Source: Botryllus schlosseri | Taxonomy: Eukaryota | Assembly (NCBI GenBank): GCA_051294905.1 | Contig: CM119372.1 | Coordinates: forward strand, 3,782,001-3,846,000 | Direction of reading: 5' to 3' | Length of the DNA: 64,000 nucleotides | Shown: in pieces, positions 20,379 through 64,000 of the stretch | Numbering within the stretch: the first letter of the stretch is position 1 | How the letters are laid out: each line of letters begins with the position of its first letter | Translations under genes and position numbers: made by a program | Notes under the pieces: model-generated | Database searches by the model: none | What the model was told of the DNA's origin: nothing | What the model saw: the letters and a program-made list of their open reading frames with translations, nothing else

Positions 20379-23300
20379 TAGGGTTGTCCAAAATTTGAAA
20401 AATTTCGAAAATGCTGCGTTGTAATGTCGTATTCTATAGATTATTGATTAAAAACATCAACAAGCCTGAAAGAAGCTCTCAGGAACGTCGTTAAGATTTC
20501 TTACAAAGCGTTTGAAAGTAGCCGTCTGCATGTGGGCGGGGAATCGATGAAGTGGGCGGGCAATCACGAACCTAGAATTTTGATTGGTTGGAACCTGTAA
20601 TAATAAGCTACTGATTGGCTGAAATACTGATTTTGTGATCATTGCTGGTCACGATTTCGTTCTACTCTGTTGTGTTGGTTTGCAGCCATTTCTGTTCGTG
20701 GCATTGGCGATATGGTAAATTGACGTTGTTAATGCTGCCATCGACAACAGCATAACGATCCAGTAATATATTTTCTACCTGAACACTGTGTATAACAGTT
20801 TTGTTACTTCTTGCACAGGAGCTTGGCCAATTAAGATAAGAATGAGCTAGATGCATGCATCGTGCTACCTTCGAGCCTTCTAAAACATACCAGTTGACAA
20901 CGACTGTAACTCATAAATTGCAAACCAGTAGTCAATTTCTCCTTATGGCTTGTTATGGTAAGTCGACGTCTCTCTCTAAAACGAACGCATATTACACTTT
21001 TTATTCAAGATTTAACAAAGGCAAAAATGCTATTTACAAAAGGCATCATTAAAAAGTATATCGCAGGGTCAGTGTTGCAGATCACTGGCCTTTGATAAGA
21101 GTAGACTTCCTGCTGTCTCCAAAAATCTTCCTATGCTGTTCCACAGCTTGAAGCAAACTGTCTCTTTGCTGTTCATTGTCAGTCAAGATTGCAGCATAGT
21201 CTGTGCTTAGCTTGACACCTCTTTCTGCGGCATCATTAACGACTTTGACAGAACTAACGTAGCAATTCATTTTATTGAATGAATCTGAAAAGTGCCAATC
21301 ATCAACCGGTTGACGCAGCCAATCCCCAGAGCATTCAAAAACTTCAAATATGTACCACGACTGGGGCCCAATAAGGTCAGACAACGTACTGTCCTTGTTG
21401 ATCTGTATAGTTGCATTCAATGAGGGTGGGCCCCTTCTGAAACTGGAAGTTCGCTCTACTTGCAGGAGCGCCTTTGCCATATTTTCCCGGGTTTCCTTGC
21501 TTTCCGTCGGTGAAAACAAGGCGTATACAGCGGTTTCCTCAACAATATACCAGTCGTGCTTCAAAAGCTTTCGTGAAGCAGCTGTGGAAACTTGCTCATC
21601 ATATTCCTTATAACTCAACATGTGCTGAACGAATCTCAAGTCATTACCAGCTGCATCACGACCAATGCTTGAATCCACCCACGCAGGGATATAAAAGAGA
21701 ACCAAAAATAAATTGAAGCGGCGCAGCAGTTCAACTTCTTCAGATTTGTAATCTAATTGGTCGGCCCACATGAACATCTTTTGAGCATACAGAATTGTAC
21801 CCATCCATCTCGCATGGTGTGCTGCACCAGGTTTGTGATGACGTATATCTTCATCTGCACCGAGAAGAGCAAGAGCATTAGTCACACATTGCTTGTAGTC
21901 ATCCCGTGTGAAAAAATCTTTTCTGTTCAACAGTAGCTTGAACTTATCAACTATCATTGCAGCTCGTTCAGCAAAACATAGAGGAATAGTCAGAGTCTTG
22001 AATTGCTGTTCCCTGTCAAGACTGCTCCAGTTCCTTTTAAGGTGGGCAAACCATGCATTCTCTGGTCCAGTTGTGGCCTTTCCAAATAAAGATTTCCAAA
22101 CGTCTTTCACTACCAGCTCATACACATGGTGCCGACATGCATGGTAGAACACCTTCCTTCCTAGAAGGTCTTCAAGAATCTTTGCCGCACCCTTCTTCCA
22201 GCCGCTGTTGCTTGCTGTAGTGTCAAAAACCAAAGCTGTTACAGCATCTTTTATATTCCAACTTTCAATTATGTTGAAAGTGGTTTCTGCTTGCGTCTGA
22301 CCTGCAGCATTTTGCATCTTTTGAATGCCAAGTAGTTTTCCTTCTGAGTATTGAGGATGACAAGATAGGACAATTGACAGAGCCTCATACCGATTTCCTA
22401 ATCTATCCTCTGTGAGCTTTCCATCCCAATGAATAGCAACATGTTGAGGTTTATTTTCTGCAAATTTTTCTGAAATATCCTTGGAAATTTCAAGACGATT
22501 TGTTTCCCTGGCTCTCTTTGTCGAAGATCTTGACAGAGAGAACATTGCTATGTCACCGCCACAAGCCGTAATAAATGCTCCGATCAGCATTGTTGCCTTG
22601 TTGTCTGTTATTTGCAATCGATCCAGAGCTTGGGACACATGGGTATTATTCATAATATTTTTAGGTGCCATCAGCTTAATGGCTGTCGAGGTGCCAAGAC
22701 CAACATCAGCATCATAATCAGAACTTGAACTCAAACTATCACCCTCTTTTGAAGATGAAGAAGATGCTAAAACAACATAGTCATCACTTGAGTCATGTTG
22801 AATGTTTTTAACAGTTCTATCCGCCATGGTTGCTGTTTTCTTTTCGATGTCTTTAGCGAGAATCTTGTCTCTTCCCAACATTATGCATTTGCGAGATTGC
22901 TGTTGATCTTCATAGAATGCAATGTCTTCGAGCTTTCTATCATGTGATAGACAAATGTCATTTTGTATTATTGCTATCGCATCTGTACTTCCAATATCCC
23001 ACAACTTGTCCAAATCTTCCGTGAATTTTTTCCTCTTACCCTTGGGATCACTTTCCCGTTTCATGGTCGCCTTCAGAAAAATATATTTTTTGTTCAGTTT
23101 TTCAAGTAATTTCACCGCATTTCCTTTAAGTATTGTGGCAATTCTCGATATTTGCCACACTGTCATGACATCATGAACCACCACATTACATAGCTCACGA
23201 GTAGGGGTTGACTGAGGGCAATGGTCTTTCAGATGCAGAAAGTAACTCATTACTTCTCGCAAGGTTGGTAATCTCGAGCCACAGATGTAATCGCAAGCAT

Positions 23301-24082
23301 ATCCGACCAAGTAATGCTCAGATCGAGATCTTGTTCTTCTCTGTGGCAAGTGCACAGTCTTCCGCCGTTTTGCCTCTGCCATGACAGTAATATTTTTGCC
23401 TTCTATCATAAATTACAGCTACGCCTAATACATTTAAGTAACAAGTGTTACATTACGACTATTAACTCACCAACCCACAATGCCCTTGTACATAACCACA
23501 ACCACTACTAACAAAATCGACCTCATCAGAACAGAAAATGCTGCTGCAACTAAAACATTGAGCAAGGAACAAGTGTTGCATTACAACTATTGATGCATCA
23601 ACCCACAATGCGCTTTACAAATTCCCGTCTCTACTAACAGACTCGACCTCCGCAAAACAGAAACTACTGCTACAACTGATACATTCGAAGAACCACTGTT
23701 ACATTACTACTATTGACTCATCAAACCACAACACGCTTTTACAGTATTACAGCCGTCACCAACAGACTCAGCAGCAGCAAAACCTACTCCTTCTGTCAAA
23801 CACGGTGAAGCACCCAAATCAGAGCTGACAGCCGCCGTCATCATTGAAGCATAACCGATTACCCAATCAAGAATCGTGGTTTCGTCATTGCCCGCCTAGT
23901 TGCAATTTCGCCGTCGGTGGCCCGCCCACTCTTTGGCAGCTACTTTCAAACGCTTTGTAAGAAATCTTAACGACGTTCCTGAGAGCTTCTTTCAGGCTTG
24001 TTGATGTTTTTAATCAATAATCTATAGAATAAGACATTACAACGCAGCATTTTCGAAATTTTTCAAATTTTGGACAACCCTA
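20379..24082 (-). mobile_element. Full-length, apparently intact autonomous hAT-superfamily (hATm-like) DNA transposon, 3.7 kb
   Basis: 144-bp TIRs (20379-20522, 23939-24082) starting TAGGGTTGTCC, with one mismatch. Near-TSD ATGTACAT/AAGTACAT (7/8, boundary ambiguous by 1 nt). Single long ORF. Confidence 0.9.
21082..23409 (-). CDS. hAT-superfamily (hATm-like) DDE transposase, 775 aa
   Basis: Uninterrupted ORF with motifs HWDGK (D), VFDTTASNSG (D), ACRHH (CxxH) and VVNDAAERGVKL (E), lying between TIRs. Confidence 0.9.
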   Translation of the reverse strand: MIEGKNITVMAEAKRRKTVHLPQRRTRSRSEHYLVGYACDYICGSRLPTLREVMSYFLHLKDHCPQSTPTRELCNVVVHDVMTVWQISRIATILKGNAVKLLEKLNKKYIFLKATMKRESDPKGKRKKFTEDLDKLWDIGSTDAIAIIQNDICLSHDRKLEDIAFYEDQQQSRKCIMLGRDKILAKDIEKKTATMADRTVKNIQHDSSDDYVVLASSSSSKEGDSLSSSSDYDADVGLGTSTAIKLMAPKNIMNNTHVSQALDRLQITDNKATMLIGAFITACGGDIAMFSLSRSSTKRARETNRLEISKDISEKFAENKPQHVAIHWDGKLTEDRLGNRYEALSIVLSCHPQYSEGKLLGIQKMQNAAGQTQAETTFNIIESWNIKDAVTALVFDTTASNSGWKKGAAKILEDLLGRKVFYHACRHHVYELVVKDVWKSLFGKATTGPENAWFAHLKRNWSSLDREQQFKTLTIPLCFAERAAMIVDKFKLLLNRKDFFTRDDYKQCVTNALALLGADEDIRHHKPGAAHHARWMGTILYAQKMFMWADQLDYKSEEVELLRRFNLFLVLFYIPAWVDSSIGRDAAGNDLRFVQHMLSYKEYDEQVSTAASRKLLKHDWYIVEETAVYALFSPTESKETRENMAKALLQVERTSSFRRGPPSLNATIQINKDSTLSDLIGPQSWYIFEVFECSGDWLRQPVDDWHFSDSFNKMNCYVSSVKVVNDAAERGVKLSTDYAAILTDNEQQRDSLLQAVEQHRKIFGDSRKSTLIKGQ

Positions 24083-38327: not shown

Positions 38328-41300
38328 TCATGAACTGTCGTCGTCCGATGATTCATCGTCCGTCAAATCCGGCACCGGAAAGCGCAAAATAGCGGCTATC
38401 CCTGTCAACTGGGTGAGCTCTGAAACACACATAATAAAAATGCAGGGACCCATAAATTCAAAGAGGATACGACTGGCTTACACTCGTCAGCCTAGTAGAG
38501 ATTTCAATACAACTATGTATAATTGTATATCGACGAAAGTGGGGCGAAAATATTTTCGGCACTTTCTTAGACACCGATTTCGGATATTGCTGTATTTAGA
38601 AACGAAACGGTCGATTGTAGGTTGGCGGCTTGGCGCGTCTTGAAAACGATGGGTTCGTAGGGTTAATCTACTGTTTTACAATGGTGTCCGTGACTTGAGG
38701 TCGGGCGCCACTGCTTTACACCGCAAACCAGATGGCGGTATGGATTCGGATTTTCAAAACGTTCGATTCGCAGATTTTGGAACGAATACGTATTTCCGAA
38801 TATTTTGAGGCTGGACTAGGTCCTGGACTTTCCAATGTTATTTCTAATACTGAAAAGTGAGTGGTTCCAGTTCAAGTAGCGTATTTTGAAAAGTGAGTAG
38901 TTCTAACTCAGGATGCGTATTTTGAAGTGAGTAGTCTTAGTTCTAGTTGCGAATTTAGAAAATACAGCATAGCTGGTACAATGTGCAAGTCTGCAAGTAG
39001 CTCATCTCTGCCGAAAAATCAACAAGTACGACATCGACTAAAACTTACGCTCTCCCGTGATATGCATCGACGAAAACACCCGCACCGTCCCGCCGTTCTC
39101 GCGCACGCTGTCCACCACCGCTATCAACCTCTTGCGTTTCGCCACGTCGTGAGTGCGCAGCAAACCGTCGCATATCAGCAGCGTGTCAATGGCCTGCGAC
39201 TCGCTAGCTTGGAAGACTTCTTTTTCCCTGCCGCAAACGAAGGTGTGTCACGTCATTTCTACGGGACATAGCAGCGGAGAGCTGGATAAATTAAAAATTT
39301 CAAGCATCTCCAAATTAGATTGGATTTTGAATTACTGAATTCGCAAAAGATAGAAAGCATGCGGCACTTCCAAATTACATCGGAATTGGACTTACTGGAA
39401 TTCCCAAAAGCGAGAAAATTCTCAGCATTCACAAATTAGATTAGAATTAGACTTACTGAATTTGCAATATCCAGAAGAAAATTTTGTGCATTTCCAAATT
39501 ACCGAAGAATTACCAATTCGCAAAAACTAGACAATTTTCAGCATTTTCAAATTACATTAGAAATAGAATTACTGAATTCACAAAAACTAGAAAATTTTCA
39601 GCATTTTCAAATTACATTAGAATTCGAATTGCTGAATTTACAAAGACTAGAAAACTTTCAGCGTTTCCAAGGAAGATTAGAATTACTGAATCAAAAAAAA
39701 ATCGGCATTTTCAAAGTAGATTAGAACTAGAATTACTGAGTTCGAAAAAACAAGAAAATTTTCAACACTCCAAATTAGATTGTAATTAAGATGACTGCAT
39801 TTTAAAAAAAAATCGGAAATTGAAACATAATTCGAATTTGAATGAAAGACACTCATTTTCACAACCATGAGAATAGAAAGTGTCTGTACATCGACCTCAG
39901 GCTAGTACATTGTACAGTGTACACTTCTCCTATAGCATTTACAGGAAAACCGCAAATCAGATCACAATCATGAAGAGCATAAAAACATTTCACGCATTAT
40001 CTAGCCAGCCAAGTCTGCTACCATCAAACCCGACCACGCAATAATACCCGTAGTATGCTTTGTCCGGTTCCAGCTGCAGCATCTTATAGAAATGTTCCAA
40101 AACCCTGATTTCTTCCGCGGCCTTCGTGTCCGACAGCCTGGCGACCACGGCCGGATCGCTCAGCACTTCTGCAACCAGAGATCGCCGGTTTCGGAATCCG
40201 GCTCCGGAAGAAACCCGAAACTCCGACTCACCTTTCAAAGAGTGCTTGAAACCGGAGGAGGCGTGCACCAGGAGAAATTTCGGCTTGTTATCTAGCAGCA
40301 GCCTGTTGTCGATTTTGGCCGCGTAATCGAACATGTATTCGTGGAACTGGTCCTTCACGAAACCAGGGCTGGCTATCAGAACACATTTCACCACTGCAAC
40401 AAGAGAGAGAGCCGCGTATTTCAGGAGTCTTGCGACTACAGGTACAAATCCTACAACAGCATGTTGGTAATATGTGTATACTGGTTGAGGTCTAGTGAGG
40501 GTCGTTGTTCTAAATTTATCGATATAGCGAGGTCGCACTGCTGACGACCGCCGTTCCGACATGCAGTTTTAAAAGTCACTGTTCGGAGCCCGAGCCCTAT
40601 TTATACTTGAAGGGGATTTCATTTCTTTGAGAAAGTTTTTAAAAGCAAGTACAACTGATAGAGCATGTTTCACAGTCATAAAGGTCAATCATTACATGCT
40701 TTGACATCGAGCCCACTGCTTCAGTGCTTAATTCTACTCAAAAAATCAGTAATTTACTTGTAACTTCTTTCTTTTCATATTCAAGACAAAGTTCTATAAA
40801 AGAGAGATTAGACACAAGTCGTTTTTGCCCCTTTTAAGCCCAAAACTAGCTTTATAGTGTGTATGTATGTTTATCAATATATTGCGAAATTCGCTTTTTT
40901 TTGGCTCGTTCGGGGAAATTGCACGGCCACTAGAGGGTGCACGAACCCAACATTACGATAGAAATTATTTATTTGATATTTGGCACCACACATCGAGATC
41001 ACCTTTCGAAGAGTTGTTCAAAAATGACTTACAGTGCATAGTAAATTTGACTCAATTCAAACCGGCGGAAGAGAATTTACTGGAGTGGAAAGGTTTTACG
41101 GTGGGTGGCTTTAAAATTGATGATGAATTTCCCGAAATCCAAAATTTTGTACACAAATATCTTCGCTTCTACGGGTTGGAATTGAGAAACGTTTGTTACG
41201 CGTCGTTTATTGACACACCTCAACCATTTCACGGTGTAGGCAGTTATATTTGAAACAAATTTCATCTTTTAATACATAACTGTAATAGCTTCGTTTCTAC

Positions 41301-56303: not shown

Positions 56304-57633
56304 CAGTGCCGTACCAGCACTTCGTCCCCCCAAAAAATGTTGGTCTTGGCCCCCCCATAGGATGTTAAACCGAACTTTGCTTTGCCCCCCAGACCTACCT
56401 CAGGCTCTACGCTGTTTTCGCAACTTATCATCTACATTCGGTGTTCGTTTAGTGAGTCAGCTTTCTCACCTAAACGCGCGAAGCGTGAGAAATTTCTATA
56501 ATTCATGATTGAATAGGTCAATGTAACCGGGTATTGCATATATTGCTATCAATTTTTATACTCTCTCTGCTCTCGTAATCTGATTGACCGGTAGAGCTGA
56601 TTGAGGTGTGTTTGAAAAGGTAAGACCCCTCAATAATAATTAAACGTCTTCGAGTGTATAGTGTATACCCGTTGGCAGGAACGAAACAGCATTTCGTCAA
56701 GCCCCCCAAAAAAGCGTTGAGTCTTGGGCTCCCATAGGGTGATAAACCGACCCCCCATCACGTTATTCGCTTTTGCCACGAAATTATAGCTGGACCGTTC
56801 AGCGAGCCTGCGCGAAGCGCGAAATTTTCGATAATTCATGCTAAAATCGGTCAATAAGATCAGTATAATTGCATATATATTGCTATCAATTTCTTGTCCT
56901 CTCTGCTCACGTAATCAGATTTACCGGTAGAACTGAGTGAGGTGTCTTGGAAACTGTATGGCCCGTAAATAATAATTAAACATTTTCGGGCGGGCATACC
57001 TCTTGGTATGATTTCGTTACATGGTGTTATGTCGTGACCTCTTGTCTGCTATATCAAAAAATATAGAATCCCCCAAACGTACTAAATTAAAAGATCACAC
57101 GGTTTCAAACTCGTATTTCGTCACTGGCATATAATTTTTCCCTGTGGGATGGTGTTTGTCTAGTGAGGTTCATATTGCCAAGACAGGAACATTCGGCGCC
57201 AGTCATTTAGGCGTCTATGGACAATTAAACCTATATGTGTTTTGTATATATAACGAAGTTTTTGATCATCATGAGGGCAGTCCTTTTCGGCCAAGGTTTT
57301 CTCGCTGCCGATCGTTCTGGCACACTTCTTGGAGTCGCATCCTACATGGCCTACAACTTTTTATGTCTTGGTGCGTCGTGGCGCGGTAATGGCCAACGCC
57401 GATATGCCCATTTCTATAAATCTTGCGTATTTTTTCTTGGGGGGAAGAGTACCCAATAATCTAGATATTTGGCAACTGCAAATCGCGCTCAGCGCGAAAA
57501 AAAATTGAAAAAGTTGCATAAATTTTCAAAAAATACTCTGTAATTTATGCTAGTTCACGAAATAATTTTGGGCCCCCTTCGAGCTCACCCCCCCCCCAAT
57601 TGGGGGGTTTGGGGTGCGGCAGTTACGGTCCTG
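56304..57633. mobile_element. Non-autonomous hAT element, 1330 bp, inverted relative to 32082-33356
   Basis: Reverse-complement colinearity with 32082-33356; perfect TSD ATTCTAGC (56296-56303, 57634-57641). Confidence 0.85.
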
Positions 57634-57978
57634 ATTCTAGCTATCGCCACTATGATATGTTAAATGCTCTGCAACCACATAGGTTAGAGTTTCCATATGT
57701 CCTCCGTTCGGAGGATTTGACATCCTTTTTTGGGAAATCGGAAACGTCCTCCGAGGACGCGTAAATTTTCTCATTTGTGGGAAATTCGTCTTTCTTTATA
57801 GATTCGACAGCTAGGCTAATGGGCAGGCACAACTAAAAACCGCCACAAATGACGCGCACAACCCGTAAAAAATTTAGAATCAGAAGTAATATGGTAGTCC
57901 TGTAATTTAACTTTTGAGATTTTTAAGAATTGTCCTGCTTTCCGGATCCTAACAGCGGAGCGATCAGAAGCCATAAAC

Positions 57979-58170
57979 TCTGCCATTGGCAAACATCTGT
58001 TGGATAATCCCGCTTGTGCAAAAAATTATCGAGACGACAGATTTCGCGTCATCCGAAGGGGCCGCTCACACTTTCATCTGTGTGCCTTGGAGTCAACCTT
58101 TATCAAGCTGCATCAGCCCAAGCTTTGTCTACAGAAGGAGTTCGTGCACCATCTTAAATTAGTACATTGA
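57979..58170 (+). pseudogene. Penelope-like GIY-YIG endonuclease C-terminal remnant
   Basis: Start-less open frame (57898-58170) reads SAIGKHLLDNPACAKNYRDDRFRVIRRGRSHFHLCALESTFIKLHQPKLCLQKE, the typical SAI..HL...C...F.I.....L..LE..FI....P.L..QKE end of Penelope-like proteins. Confidence 0.8.
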
Positions 58171-58276
58171 ACGCTCTCTTATTCGATATCTCATTCCAAG
58201 CTGGTGACGTCATATTTTGTGATACGATTGTTGATATACAATGTTCTTTCCAATTCTCTACTAGTTGCTGACGATT

Positions 58277-58310
58277 ACCCCTGACGAATGTCACCCGAAA
58301 ATATTCGGGT
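58277..58310 (+). ncRNA. Minimal type I hammerhead ribozyme (10.1-11.1 pair mismatched)
   Basis: ACCC-CUGACGA-A(UGUCACC)C-GAA-AAUAUU-C-GGGU; core intact, but A replaces G10.1. Confidence 0.6.
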
Positions 58311-58506
58311 TCATTTCAATATGAATATACTTTTCAATTGTATATTGGAATTCTGTGCCTCCAGAAGCTCTTTAAACCTAACAAATGTCTACTTATCGGT
58401 TTGTATAGAAACATTTATTGTCTTTAGACAAAATTGCAATTGATGTATAGAATTATATGCCAAGCATAGATTTCACTAAAATACGTCGCCATCCATTTCT
58501 CTTTCG

Positions 58507-61500
58507 CTAGCGTTCTCTGAAACCGATGACATCTCGTTGAATCGTATCCGCATAGTCCGATTTTTCACGATCATGATTGAGTAAGCGCGGAAATAACACC
58601 TTCATATGCTCCGTTTCATCGGTTTGGTCTGGACTGGAGGGATCGGAATTATTCGCATCCAGTAGCTTCTCAATCTTTCGTAGTCGTAGCTTCAATTCTA
58701 GACCGATAAATAAATATATAAACTGTTGGAGGTTGGGACAGTCATGGGATTGTATAATTTTTCACTTTAACGCTATCATATAAAGACTTCTGCAATATCC
58801 GGCTTCGACAGATATGGTTGTGTAATGTGTATTTACTCTCGAAGAAGAAAGTGGGATAATGACCATGTTTTTCGAAATGATGCCACTATTTGTTGATATC
58901 ACAGTTAATCAGGATTAATCAGGCACTGCGGTGGTACTTGAATATGTTCAATTGTTCGTGCATTTGCAGTCGCAGATAAAGAAGTGAGCTCGTGGCATTT
59001 TGAGATGGTACCACTAACTCACAATATCAACTATCTGCGTTTCAGGCGACACGCATGCATCAATTCAATAGCAGGCACATTTATGATAATTTATGGATTC
59101 CGAGGATTCGACTCATTTGATTCTATACCGGACATTTACCGCATTTTAAGGCAAGCTATGTACGTGTCCAATTTTGAATAAAAATTTGTTCAAGATTGGT
59201 CATTCATAAAGACCAGTGGACAAACATATAGATGCCTGCTATGATAATAATATTATACATAGGCCTACTGTATATATAACATGTGAGCAAATTAAGGCTC
59301 TCCAATACCTGCCTCCCCTGACCGATCGTTCTTGTGCTATAGCTATAAGCTAGTTTCAGAGAGTATCCGAGTTCGCCTATCTCATTTATTAGCACTTACT
59401 TTCTGCAGACTAGGTCATAGTGGGTACGTTACTAGCGGTACATGCGAAAATTCCTCGCTAAACTTTGCTTTGAAGATAGGCGTGAGTGATTTTGGAAAAG
59501 TACTTTCCTTTCGAAAAGAGTTTAACACATTTTTATTGCTACTTTGCAGTTTGCACATACACCAGGGGTCACCGACACGCGGTCCGAGGTCATGTTTTGC
59601 GGCCGGCGAACTGATTTGAGATATCGGAGCAACTCTTGGTATAACATTTTTAAATGCTCAAATTGATTTCCGTTTCAAAATATTGTTGGTGGTATTCAAA
59701 ATAAGCTATTATCCTGTGCCCAACACCACTATTTCTCACATGCTGATACGTCTTCGGCGATGGTATTATGAATACGAATGAATTGGAATGGACAATGGGC
59801 ATATTGCCATCAGGCCCAGACACGGCCAAGACCAAGACACTTAGAAAACGACTTAAGGCTTCCCCACAAGACCAAGCTTCAAGAAGAGTTAGTTTTCCTG
59901 CAAACGCCGTGTATAGCTAACCCCGATATCGATTCTTTAGTCGCTTAAAAGTGTTGTCGGATGCGCTGCTTGTAGTTCAAAATATATTGAAAGTGGAGAT
60001 CATGATATTCCTGTTGTATTTCTGAGAATATATTTTTTCTTGGTGGTAGCTAGGCCAGTCGCACATGTTAGAGAGCATGACATTTTACTGACGTAGAGTT
60101 TTAAAATCGTGATTGTTAAACCGTGTGGCCTATTTTATCGCGATATTGAATTCATGCGGTCCGCGGCCACTACGAAATTTGAAAAGTGGCCCGCGAGCCG
60201 CGACCCGTTTTGAGTTGGCGACCCCTGTGTTACACGTAAATTAGAATAAATATACATTTAATGACATGTGGCATTCTGGCGCCGTTCTTTGAAATGCTGA
60301 AACTTCATAACCTAATAAAGTTGATCCAGTGCAGGGGTGCCAAGAACTATTTATGCCATTGAGGGGTGTGGCAAGGTTAAGAACCATTGCTCACAACATT
60401 TGCTCGGCAACAGAAATATGTCATTTCACAGTCATACGCTTGAGCAAAGAGTACAGAGCACGAGCGTGCACCATGATATAGTTTGTGTGTCATAAATAAC
60501 GATCGATCATTCCTCGAGACATCTGCGTAGACGCAAATGCATGAGACATTGCATTGGGGATATTTAATGGACTGCTTTCTGCAGTGTAATTAATAATCAA
60601 ATGGTATCAAATGGATCTATATTAAGACATATTATTGATATTGGTATTGATGGTGTAAAAGACAGTGACGCTTATCGCCAGAAAGACCAGACGCTGACTT
60701 GAAAATGCGGGCGTAATGCGAAATTATGGACAATCAATTTTCTACGTAAGAACACAAACACTGAGACAACATGAGGACTAGCACAAATTTACATATATAT
60801 TTGCCACGCGACAGAACGAACTATGCCACTGGAGACAACATTTCGAGGGTAATGAGTAGAAGGTCGAGCGTAGCAGTAATATTGCGAGCTCGAGGGCCTT
60901 GTCGAATAAAAAGTTTCGGTGAAAGTCATGCCGGAAGCTCATATAATTCAGTTTACATTGCTAGCACCTCTTACCCTCAAATTCCTTCGGTATGTTGGCG
61001 CTTTCTTCAGTATCTCGTAATAACACTGCGAGGCAGTTTTCGATTGAAGTGTAGATTCGGCTGAAAACAGGTGGATTTAGTGGGCGAAATTGTGAATAAA
61101 CGCGATTCTTCAACTGGACGCTTACCAAGAATCAATGACTTTTTGAATCAGGACGGGAGTACCAGGTACTTTTCGGGCATCATATTTACCACTGGCATCG
61201 TTTGATGGCAATTTCGTTCCGACGCGATTTTGCAGGATTCTCGTTACCGTGATAGGTAACGTATCAATTGCTGAAGAGTCACGTTGATTTTGCCAGTTTT
61301 GTTTCTGTCCATTGAGTGGAAAATCGTAAGTCTGACTGCCGAAATCATCAGTTGACTTGATACTGAAGAACGATCGTTTTCCACCAGGTCTTAATGTAGC
61401 TGTCCAATGCTGTCTCTTTGCCTGTTTTATGTGGTTGGCCGGATGGTCCATCATTCCGTTCGTAGTGCTGATTATTATCAAAACAAACCATATCTTCGCG

Positions 61501-61526
61501 AAGACATTCACAGCTCGCTCGTCCAT
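58507..61526 (-). CDS. gnrh: Gonadotropin-releasing hormone precursor (225 aa); mature peptide pQHWTATLRPG-amide
   Basis: Exons 61526-61126, 61060-60975 and 58697-58507 (phases 2 and 1 fit, 678 nt). Hydrophobic signal peptide, KR-QHWTATLRPG-GKR at 61412-61374, GAP-like tail containing two Cys. Confidence 0.85.
59563..60227. mobile_element. hAT-type MITE in GnRH intron 2
   Basis: CAGGGGTCACCGAC / GTTGGCGACCCCTG termini; flanks match at only 5/8. Confidence 0.5.
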
Positions 61527-63181
61527 AACACTATAAGCCTTGTGCTAAAAAATAGTTATATCCGTTCAAGATTTCGTGTTTTTATCAATGTTCTCTTCTC
61601 AGTACGAACTGAGTTCTTTGCGATACACTGGGGTTTTATAGGGCGAACAGGAGATGACAAGAAGAAAAAAAGTCATCAAACTTCATGTTGCCCGTTCAGT
61701 AATGGGTTCAGGCTCATTATTTTGCGACAACGCACACGATACAAACATTGTCTTTCATTTAATCTTCAAATTTTTTAATTTATAGATCTACATATTTTCC
61801 GGAAGGCTATCTATATATAGATCCAGATCCCATGAACATATCGTACTATTTCGACGAAATCGAAACTTTAATCAGCTATATTTTAAGTCATGTAGTTCAC
61901 GATAGTCTGTTGCAGCAGTTACACAAGTTAAATTATTCATTTCTAATATGATCATTTCCACTAAAATTTGGAAACAAGTCATATCCAGTGGTAACCTGTA
62001 CAGAGCACGCTCGTTTAATTAATATCGACGACGTCTAACTCAGTGTTGTGAAACATAATTCATCCGATATCCCATGGGACTCTTGTAGATGTACACGTCC
62101 TGTTTAGTCTATTCACGGAAAGATTGAAATTATTATATATATAGTGGGAAACGCCGGGGATGATATGTACAATATTAGTAAACCGTAATGCAGCTACTCC
62201 CTTTACGTCATAGCACAACGCATTAGCAGTTCAGTTTTTCAAATATAAGTCCATGCATGCGTGCACGCCTTCGTGTGAAATCAGCGCACCCCAAAGTACA
62301 TCGTTCCATTGAGTCATACATCTTACGTATTTGTAGGCCTATATGAAAATGCATTTAATAGAAGAGAGAATGTTTCCAGAGATATAGTGCTCTTTCAGGT
62401 GTTACTATTTTGGACATGATTAGCCCACTGTTTATTGCACAATCAGGTTTTATGCTGTGTTAGGCTTCAATTACAACCAAACAAAAATCAATCACGGATT
62501 TCCAATCGATCGACATAAATACGTAGCTCCGATGGTAGCGTTGTTAAATCAAACCATATGCTTGTGCCAATGGAACAGATTGTTTTTAACGCCCTGAATT
62601 TCATATATGTCTCTATCCTTATACCAGTATCTTGTTAGGTATGAATTTACATCAAAGTAATTCCCACACCAACTTCCTTATCTCTCCAATTCCTCAAATT
62701 GGTTTTGGAGCATCATATCAAGATCAACACTACCTCAAAACGTCCCGCAATACTTCAGCAGTATACTGCAACTGCAACACAGTATACTGTGACGTCAGAA
62801 TATTCTCGCATCTGCTTTGGTCGTCTGTGGACGTAGTGTTGACTGTCAATAAACTGCATCTAAGCATGAGTCATGATGACCCATAAAAATATGGTATTTT
62901 CAATTTGGAGTGTGCTAATGGCTTTGCTCTGTAAGCTATTATACAGTATATTTAATAATAAATCAAATCCCATTTAGTTAATATAATTAACGCTGAGATC
63001 CCAGTGCTTTCAATGCCCTCAATTTGGATTACATAATAAAAACACGTAGTATATGCAGCTTGTCATAAAAATTTGTGACGCGGTGAACATCACAAATATC
63101 TCGGAACAATTTTATCGAGCAAGAAAAGTGGAGATTGTTGTTCGACTCATGAAAATGTGTATGTAGCGTGTTAGTAATCAC

Positions 63182-63637
63182 TAGGGCAAGTTTTTGCAGC
63201 TTTTGCAACTTTTTTACAGCTTCCAGCAGCTTCCTAAATACTCGGAAGATATGTAGAATTCTGTTTTAAGCTGTTTGAAGGAATCTTATATTGCAACTTT
63301 TTGCAACTTTTGTCCATTTATTTTCATGCAACTTTTTCGATTTTTCATGAGTGTATTTTCGATTTTGGTGAAATTCACGGCCAAATTCGATTGCAATACC
63401 GTAAATTAGCACTGAAGTAACGTTCTTACGGGTATTTCGGGAGCTGAGCCGGAAAGTTGACATTTTTTTAGTCAATCAGGAGTGGAACTGGGAAGTTGAC
63501 CTTTTTTTTAGTCAGCCGAGCAAAATGTGATCTTTTAGTGCAACATTGGTGAAAAACTAAATGCAACTTTTTATGCAACTTTTGTCACAAATAAATGTAA
63601 CTTTCCACGGATTTAACTGCAACAAAAACTTGCCCTA
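63182..63637. mobile_element. hAT-type MITE upstream of GnRH
   Basis: TIR TAGGGCAAGTTTTTG / CAAAAACTTGCCCTA; perfect TSD GTAATCAC (63174-63181, 63638-63645). Confidence 0.85.
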
Positions 63638-64000
63638 GTAATCACTCTACAGGGCGTACACAAACCGGTATGTCCGCTTCCGCTATACGTAGTATCGCCG
63701 TGTGTCGCAAGACCCATCAATAAATTTATCACAAATTTCTTTTTGTACTGTTCGTTATGTCCGGAATGATTTAGAACTGGTGCGGCCGTCACTACATACA
63801 TGAGTCTTATGGAAAGAGTATTCCAACACTTGATACATCGTCGTGCCGCAATAATAGAAATAGTTACAATTTCGTGTATTTAACTGCCTTTTCGAGGCAA
63901 CTTACGATTGATAAAATACAATAGAATGATAGATGAATGAAATACTAATCCATGATTTGTATATTAATATAATGTAACTCCTCCCGATCATTGTTAAATA

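Follow-up and report, generated by a model that had tools for sequence, protein, structure and literature searches.

A probable single-copy gonadotropin-releasing hormone gene with threonine at position 4 in the ascidian Botryllus schlosseri

Can an ascidian gonadotropin-releasing hormone (GnRH) carry threonine at its fourth position and be encoded by a gene with one copy of the peptide? The question is raised by a locus on the minus strand of a 64-kb stretch of the genome of Botryllus schlosseri (GenBank assembly GCA_051294905.1, contig CM119372.1, positions 3,782,001 to 3,846,000; this whole stretch of 64,000 nucleotides is called the window below), where an open reading frame (ORF) contains the peptide QHWTATLRPG set between basic cleavage sites. 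The chordate consensus is a peptide of ten residues that starts with pGlu-His-Trp-Ser and ends in Pro-Gly-amide; it is kept, Ser4 included, by all 12 published ascidian GnRHs, none of which has Arg8, and the published ascidian gnrh genes encode several copies (PMC5592718, PMC7697785). We consider it very probable that the locus is a functional three-exon ascidian gene for a single-copy GnRH-family preprohormone of ca. 225 residues.

The peptide and its precursor

The frame that carries the QHWTATLRPG unit is opened by an ATG at 61526 on the minus strand, and from 61418 to 61374 the translation reads KR-QHWTATLRPG-GKR. An earlier note on this DNA, made from the sequence, had described a signal peptide, a spacer of 14 residues, Lys-Arg, the decapeptide and Gly-Lys-Arg at these coordinates, and had counted 7/10 identities with mammalian GnRH1; the translation of the minus strand bears out the first and a recount agrees with the second. 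The parts of the precursor are as follows.

61455-61526, minus strand: predicted signal peptide of 24 residues (1-24) with the small residues Thr at -3 and Gly at -1 (cleavage site placed manually)
61413-61454, minus strand: 14-residue spacer, ending in the dibasic Lys-Arg (61418-61413) (translation)
61383-61412, minus strand: GnRH decapeptide QHWTATLRPG (translation), predicted mature form pGlu...Pro-Gly-amide
61374-61382, minus strand: Gly-Lys-Arg, amidation donor and dibasic cleavage site (translation)

By manual assessment the signal peptide has a charged N-region followed by a hydrophobic core (IWFVLIIIS, residues 12-20, with a mean Kyte-Doolittle value of 3.0). The predicted precursor of ca. 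225 residues thus consists of signal peptide, spacer, one GnRH unit, Gly-Lys-Arg and a C-terminal part of 174 residues, two of them Cys. There is no further unit in this product or in the window, and the pattern QHW...PGG[KR] occurs a single time across the six frames of the 64 kb. Using the six-frame amino-acid frequencies of the window itself, the fuller motif [KR]2-QHW-x5-PG-G-[KR]2 is expected 2e-8 times per window, or about 2e-4 times in ca. 600 Mb, and a chance origin of KR-QHWTATLRPG-GKR is excluded.

The steps that lead from such a precursor to a mature peptide belong to the established neuropeptide pathway. Along this route the signal peptide would be removed, a prohormone convertase would cleave after Lys37-Arg38 and Lys50-Arg51, and the basic residues would be trimmed by carboxypeptidase E. 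Peptidylglycine alpha-amidating monooxygenase would then amidate Gly48, with Gly49 as the donor, and the exposed N-terminal Gln would cyclise to pyroglutamate. The product would be pQHWTATLRPG-NH2 (calculated monoisotopic mass 1147.589, [M+H]+ 1148.596, [M+2H]2+ 574.802), a neuropeptide whose expected targets are one or more of the animal's class-A GnRH receptors. What we observed of the gene is its sequence, where its transcription starts, how its transcript is spliced and the pattern of conservation; that the precursor is processed, and that the peptide is secreted and acts on a receptor, we infer from this route.

Transcript and gene structure

RNA was mapped on 59500-63500 from three contig sets (X10, X18 and X6) and one raw bulk run (X23), which come from four studies and are unstranded. 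The earlier note had held that its reading would fall if no transcript were detected; RNA of the gene is present in runs from all four studies, with unbroken coverage from 61609 to 60977. The gene model that results is given here in the order of transcription.

61634-61640, minus strand: TATAAAA box, -31 to -25 from the mapped start at 61609 (sequence)
61527-61609, minus strand: 5' untranslated region (UTR), 83 nt, without upstream ATG; transcription start at 61609 (13 X23 raw reads)
61126-61609, minus strand: exon 1, with the 5' UTR, codons 1-133 and two bases of codon 134 (RNA contigs and reads)
61061-61125, minus strand: intron 1, 65 nt, GTAAG...AG (joint 61060/61126 in RNA; CT..AC on the plus strand)
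60975-61060, minus strand: exon 2, 86 nt, ca. 28 codons, two Cys (X10 contig record positions 486-569)
58698-60974, minus strand: intron 2, ca. 2.3 kb (loose end of the X10 contig matches the start of exon 3)
58395-58697, minus strand: exon 3, last 62 codons, stop codon 58509-58507, AATAAA 58419-58414, 3' end approximate (open frame and poly(A) signal)

The transcription start is marked by 13 raw reads of X23 in which 61609 is immediately preceded by the reverse complement of GCAGTGGTATCAACGCAGAGTACATGGGGG, which we take to be the SMART template-switch oligo and hence a marker of the 5' end of an mRNA. The start codon stands in the context GTTATGG. Exon 1 is spanned by an X10 contig of 811 nt (61609-61126), and contigs from X18 and X6 as well as raw reads from X23 also map there. 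The joint 61060/61126, which removes intron 1, is found in this same 811-nt contig and in 13 X23 reads with 10 distinct starts. A reading of the genomic sequence without splicing gives a shorter ORF of 134 residues; it was rejected, its TAA (61124-61122) being located inside the spliced-out intron. At the other end of exon 2 the reads stop at 60977 beside a GTAAG donor, and the final two bases of the exon are assigned by allowing an allelic C>T at 60976. Past 60977 the loose end of the X10 contig equals 58699-58670 with one mismatch, right after an AG acceptor. The picture is that of a TATA-driven, capped and spliced three-exon mRNA whose first ATG starts the frame of a secretory precursor, with a single GnRH unit that is conserved.

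The last exon is the part of this model about which we are most cautious. The X23 loose-end consensus departs from the X10 contig after eight bases of exon 3, and could stem from a divergent allele or from the use of another last exon. An alternative third exon within the window was sought and dropped, as this consensus has no match anywhere in it. The C-terminal part may be variable or alternatively spliced, and the last 62 residues are less certain than the rest because they are tied to the transcript by 30 nt of RNA and the X23 reads are discordant there. The decapeptide, encoded in exon 1, is unaffected by this uncertainty.

Repeats with a high RNA depth flank the gene (60036-60303 and 63118-63500), and it might be supposed that the frame is a chance ORF, or that the motif was picked up in a non-coding or transposon-derived transcript. 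However, the gene has an even read depth, unlike that of the repeats, and the motif, expected by chance 2e-8 times in the whole window, is found 14 residues past a signal peptide, in the frame that the first ATG of a TATA-driven mRNA opens. Two other precursors, described in the next section, are arranged alike. An origin of this kind seems to us exceedingly improbable.

Conservation among alleles and related precursors

Two precursors from public sequence data have the same or nearly the same decapeptide as that of Botryllus. The first, P0001 (139 residues, from a Logan contig of SRR25569784), was retrieved by word-index search and reads AKR-QHWTATLRPG-GKRS, with the same decapeptide as in the window. 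The second, P0008, a complete ORF in a transcript-like contig of 946 nt (SRR32906208), was retrieved by the profile search described below and reads VKR-QHWTASLRPG-GKRSF, that is, 9/10 identical. The three share a single-copy layout, the Lys-Arg ahead of the decapeptide, flanks of the type [AV]KR and GKRS, and the position of the GnRH unit, which begins at residue 36-40 in all of them. Within the 45-nt core the window and P0008 have 8 nucleotide differences, of which 6 are silent third-position changes and the other 2 give Thr6Ser. The common core extends over 17-19 residues and everything beyond it is unalignable; outside it, local-alignment scores among the three proteins were no better than those of shuffled controls. 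P0001 and P0008 are probable orthologues of the window gene, judging from these sequences. We had also considered a common exon boundary, at 'DSW', as the end of P0001, an idea that was dropped when MAFFT aligned that part differently.

A similar contrast is seen within the species. In the coding sequence of exons 1 and 2 there are 22 sites where the alleles of the RNA runs depart from the window, with 15 replacement and 7 silent changes, a proportion close to neutral, and in none of the four RNA runs is there an allelic difference in the 15 codons from KR to GKR. Constraint is confined to the peptide and its cleavage sites, and this is the usual signature of a bioactive peptide in a fast-evolving precursor.

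P0008 has a degenerate second unit, LHWTAGLSSG-GKK, and P0001 may have one as well (PKWTTALKRY). This fits a descent of the window gene lineage from a multi-copy ancestor through the loss of copies. It could also be taken as a sign that the locus is a transcribed but decaying paralogue, the relic of a multi-copy GnRH gene whose peptide is no longer important, and the near-neutral flanks of the precursor (15 replacement against 7 silent changes) would point in the same direction as these apparently lost copies. Fast-evolving flanks are usual for neuropeptide precursors. Decay would also have to be reconciled with a frame that is intact, an mRNA that is spliced and capped, a core and two cleavage sites that are invariant between alleles, and a peptide that is identical or 9/10 identical across three precursors in spite of 6 silent changes in the core. 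We regard it as very unlikely, and continue with the locus as a functional gene.

Relationship to the GnRH family

A profile made from the window ORF and P0001 was run, without word index, against 1.84 billion representative proteins (E<=1e-3). It gave 14 matches, all of them precursors in which the unit [KR]R-QHW[ST]x5PG-G[KR][KR] is present in one to seven copies. The named matches were all ascidian: H2ZFB0 of Ciona savignyi, the 'Progonadoliberin' of Clavelina lepadiformis and XP_039267008 of Styela clava. H2ZFB0 contains the published peptides t-GnRH-5 (twice) and t-GnRH-6, and it and the Clavelina protein were matched with E-values from 4e-4 to 1e-5 for the whole library; the relationship to accepted GnRH precursors is therefore detectable by profile. 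With a word index the window ORF retrieved P0001 only, while P0001 and P0008 retrieved only themselves, and the product of Botryllus schlosseri itself was not returned from the public protein collections searched. Language-model features placed the ORF near small neuropeptide precursors, among them those of bombesin, spexin, galanin and corazonin and progonadoliberin-2, which we take as a lead only.

The peptide itself has most of the features of the family. Its N-terminal Gln is exposed by Lys-Arg, so that cyclisation would be expected, and is followed by His2-Trp3. It has ten residues and lacks the two-residue insertion after pGlu that is found in the GnRH-like peptides of non-chordates (PMC5592718, PMC7697785). 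Pro9-Gly10 is followed by Gly-Lys-Arg, as in nearly all the units retrieved, and the precursor starts with an N-terminal signal peptide, as assessed manually above.

Some observations weigh against our interpretation and have to be set beside this. One is the Ser4 of the consensus, in the place of which the window peptide has Thr. The next is that Pfam PF00446 found no match in the window ORF, in P0001 or in P0008, each of them single-copy, even at E<=10. The other two concern the 62 C-terminal codons: RNA covers the first 30 nt of exon 3, the remainder being deduced from the open frame, and the X23 raw reads at the joint 60977/58697 agree among themselves at only 0.66. The multiplicity of units typical of published ascidian gnrh genes is absent, as the window precursor has one.

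The weight of the second is reduced by the controls. The precursors that passed PF00446 (P0002 with 89.6 bits, P0014 with 25.9, P0011 with 24.6 and P0015 with 19.0) did so with 7, 3, 2 and 2 matched units, respectively, and a single divergent copy may for this reason score too low on a model of ten positions. The Pfam scan of the window ORF gave a B56 match alone, which we discarded as spurious, and that of exon 3 gave nothing. As to Ser4, we treat it as a consensus position and not as an absolute requirement, because accepted GnRHs deviate at neighbouring positions (Tyr3 in lamprey GnRH-I, Tyr2 in the guinea pig; tables of PMC5592718 and PMC7697785), because Thr4 units share precursors with Ser4 units and because a Thr4 precursor, that of Styela, passes Pfam. 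Taken together, the profile search, the conservation and the transcript uphold the proposal of the earlier note that this is a GnRH-type precursor. We are confident, on the strength of the sequence comparisons, that the locus encodes a conserved single-copy member of the ascidian GnRH family whose decapeptide would be expected to act on GnRH receptors.

Thr4 and Arg8 in other ascidian precursors

The earlier note had regarded both Thr4 and Arg8 as exceptional, with the tunicate forms as all Ser4 and none Arg8. This is correct for the 12 published peptides and does not hold for the sequences in databases. Ten Thr4 units were retrieved in six precursors, and in 10/10 of them position 7 is Leu or Ile. 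Besides QHWTATLRPG (window and P0001) and QHWTASLRPG (P0008), they include three units of Styela clava XP_039267008 (QHWTTGIGPG, QHWTSGLAPG and QHWTTGLSPG), two of P0007 (QHWTDDLFPG and QHWTFDLFPG) and one of P0013 (QHWTYDLYPG). In P0007 and P0013 the Thr4 units follow a Ser4 unit within one intron-free ORF, and since both kinds share a precursor they can be seen as ordinary paralogous GnRH copies. Thr for Ser is, besides, a conservative change. Arg8 is found in QHWSYGMRPG of Clavelina lepadiformis (P0011), in three units of P0005 and in one of P0009. Thr4 and Arg8 are, in other words, new to the literature and not to the databases.

Searchable papers contained neither QHWTATLRPG nor QHWTA, nor QHWT together with GnRH, with the reservation that printing with dashes also hid the t-GnRH strings from this kind of search. 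Within that scope the statement of the earlier note that the decapeptide is undescribed stands. A Thr4/Leu7 subgroup of ascidian GnRHs, as delimited by these sequences, is present in public data and undescribed in the searchable literature.

It is conceivable that gene and peptide are both real and that the peptide is something other than an agonist of GnRH receptors: a modulator or partial antagonist, or the ligand of another receptor. Ciona offers a precedent in Ci-GnRH-X, an endogenous antagonist of 16 residues derived from GnRH, and its GnRH receptors show ligand-selective Ca2+ and cAMP signalling (PMC5592718, PMC7697785). Thr4 and the non-aromatic residue at position 5 set the window peptide apart from the published agonists, and the single copy sets the gene apart from the published ascidian ones. 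However, the length of an agonist, the pGlu-His-Trp start, the Pro-Gly-amide end and the Gly-Lys-Arg are all kept, in contrast to the extended Ci-GnRH-X, and the tandem arrangement of Thr4 with Ser4 units in P0007 and P0013 suggests that both kinds are used alike. We find a role of this sort unlikely, and favor the expected action on GnRH receptors.

Two side observations may be recorded here. At position 7 most Ser4 units have an aromatic residue and the Thr4 units Leu or Ile; variation at positions 4 and 7 may be coupled. The Arg8 units of P0005 and P0009 are QHWSDKYRPG, QHWSDWYRPG, QHWSMAYRPG and QHWSVKFRPG.

Comparison with known GnRH genes

The window peptide shares with the published ascidian GnRHs (t-GnRH-1 to -11 and Ci-GnRH-X) the pGlu-His-Trp start, the Pro-Gly-amide end and a length that is mostly ten residues. 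Its precursor resembles those encoded by Ci-gnrh1, Ci-gnrh2 and the gnrh of Halocynthia roretzi in the basic site before and the Gly-Lys-Arg after the units, and in the spacer behind the signal peptide. Leu7 is common to the window peptide, the products of Ci-gnrh2 and t-GnRH-9. The differences are Thr4, against Ser4 in all twelve published peptides; Arg8, position 8 being basic among them only in t-GnRH-1 (Lys); and the number of copies in the precursor, which is one here and two or three for every ascidian gene published. Overall identity to the published ascidian peptides is 5-6/10, the best being the Leu7 products of Ci-gnrh2 and t-GnRH-9, so that the closest published peptide is mammalian GnRH1 with its 7/10.

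The resemblance to vertebrate GnRH1 extends to the gene. Both have Leu7-Arg8-Pro9-Gly10, one copy near the N-terminus, Gly-Lys-Arg, a long associated peptide and three coding exons. However, the window peptide has Thr4, Ala5 (non-aromatic) and Thr6 (no Gly6), and it follows a 14-residue spacer and Lys-Arg, whereas the vertebrate peptide adjoins the signal peptide. The first intron of vertebrate GnRH1 is located ca. 11 residues past the Gly-Lys-Arg; that of the window gene comes 82 residues past it. A common origin of 'LRPG' with vertebrates is unsupported because Arg8 sits in otherwise different ascidian peptides, and the Leu7-Arg8 resemblance to mammalian GnRH1 is as likely to be convergent as ancestral.

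Two related observations concern Arg8 in print and in databases. The Clavelina unit QHWSYGMRPG differs from mammalian GnRH1 at position 7 only, and is nearer to it than any published ascidian GnRH. Table 1 of PMC5592718 (2017) gives t-GnRH-1 as pQHWSYGLRPGa, which is the sequence of human GnRH1, and PMC7697785 (2020), from the same group, gives pQHWSDYFKPGa. The first of these entries looks like a misprint that could mislead comparisons of Arg8.

A further related gene is that of another ascidian, a styelid. XP_039267008 of Styela clava (P0004/P0015; LOC120342299, in our locus L005:10001-11529) is labelled 'uncharacterized protein' and is a three-unit Thr4 GnRH precursor. It has Thr4 together with Leu or Ile at position 7, a similar signal peptide and 'PAN' (blastp E 1e-7 in a set of 16 sequences), and all its GnRH units are in the first coding exon, with a last exon of 62 codons. 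It passes the Pfam GnRH model with 19.0 bits against a cut-off of 18.5. On the other side, it has three units where the window gene has one, and lacks Arg8. Within the stretches examined the two loci had no shared neighbours and matched in GnRH exon 1 only; the Styela gene is accompanied by a sulfotransferase and an M14 peptidase, without counterpart in the window. The likeness in signal peptide and 'PAN' hints at a recent common origin of the window gene with the three-copy Thr4 gene of styelids. This match of the flank to a styelid, and the fact that every named relative is ascidian, agree with the species assignment.

Significance

The ascidian GnRHs published so far come from four species and are all Ser4. 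The precursors described here indicate that position 4 is variable in the sister group of vertebrates, in which a conserved Thr4/Leu7 subgroup exists, and that not all ascidian GnRH genes are multi-copy. They also reveal a gap in annotation, since in an ascidian genome as widely used as that of Styela clava the relative goes under 'uncharacterized'. The window gene extends the known ascidian GnRH family and does not found a new one; what distinguishes it is the single copy, the combination Thr4/Leu7/Arg8 and the strict conservation of the peptide in at least three precursors.

A single-cell atlas of budding in Botryllus (2026) describes a Gnrhr2-like receptor in bud founder cells, without describing a ligand, and proposes that GnRH-like signalling couples metabolic state, budding and gonads (PMC13635237). 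The decapeptide, with its sequence and calculated mass, is a candidate Botryllus ligand for the receptor signalling proposed there. One could go further and suggest that QHWTA(T/S)LRPG represents a GnRH paralogue of the stolidobranch ascidians that is separate, single-copy and strongly conserved, with a receptor preference of its own, and is the Botryllus ligand of that Gnrhr2-like receptor. We put this forward tentatively, as a conjecture that we would at present sooner doubt than accept; if true, the onset of whole-body budding would be tied to a neuropeptide of GnRH type.

Other features of the window

The contigs mapped on the two stretches of high RNA depth, 60036-60303 (inside intron 2) and 63118-63500 (upstream of the gene), reach heterogeneous depths of up to ca. 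400 and ca. 1180, respectively. They are many, divergent and with loose ends, and probably represent expressed repeats or transposon fragments. No RNA family of Rfam was found at gathering score in 56500-64000. Farther away, and also on the minus strand, there is an intact ORF of 775 residues at 21082-23409, without Pfam match. Another ORF, of 190 residues (39990-40562, minus strand), matches domain 2 of eRF1 in Pfam (E 1e-8) and looks to be a piece of a gene of the pelota/Dom34 type.

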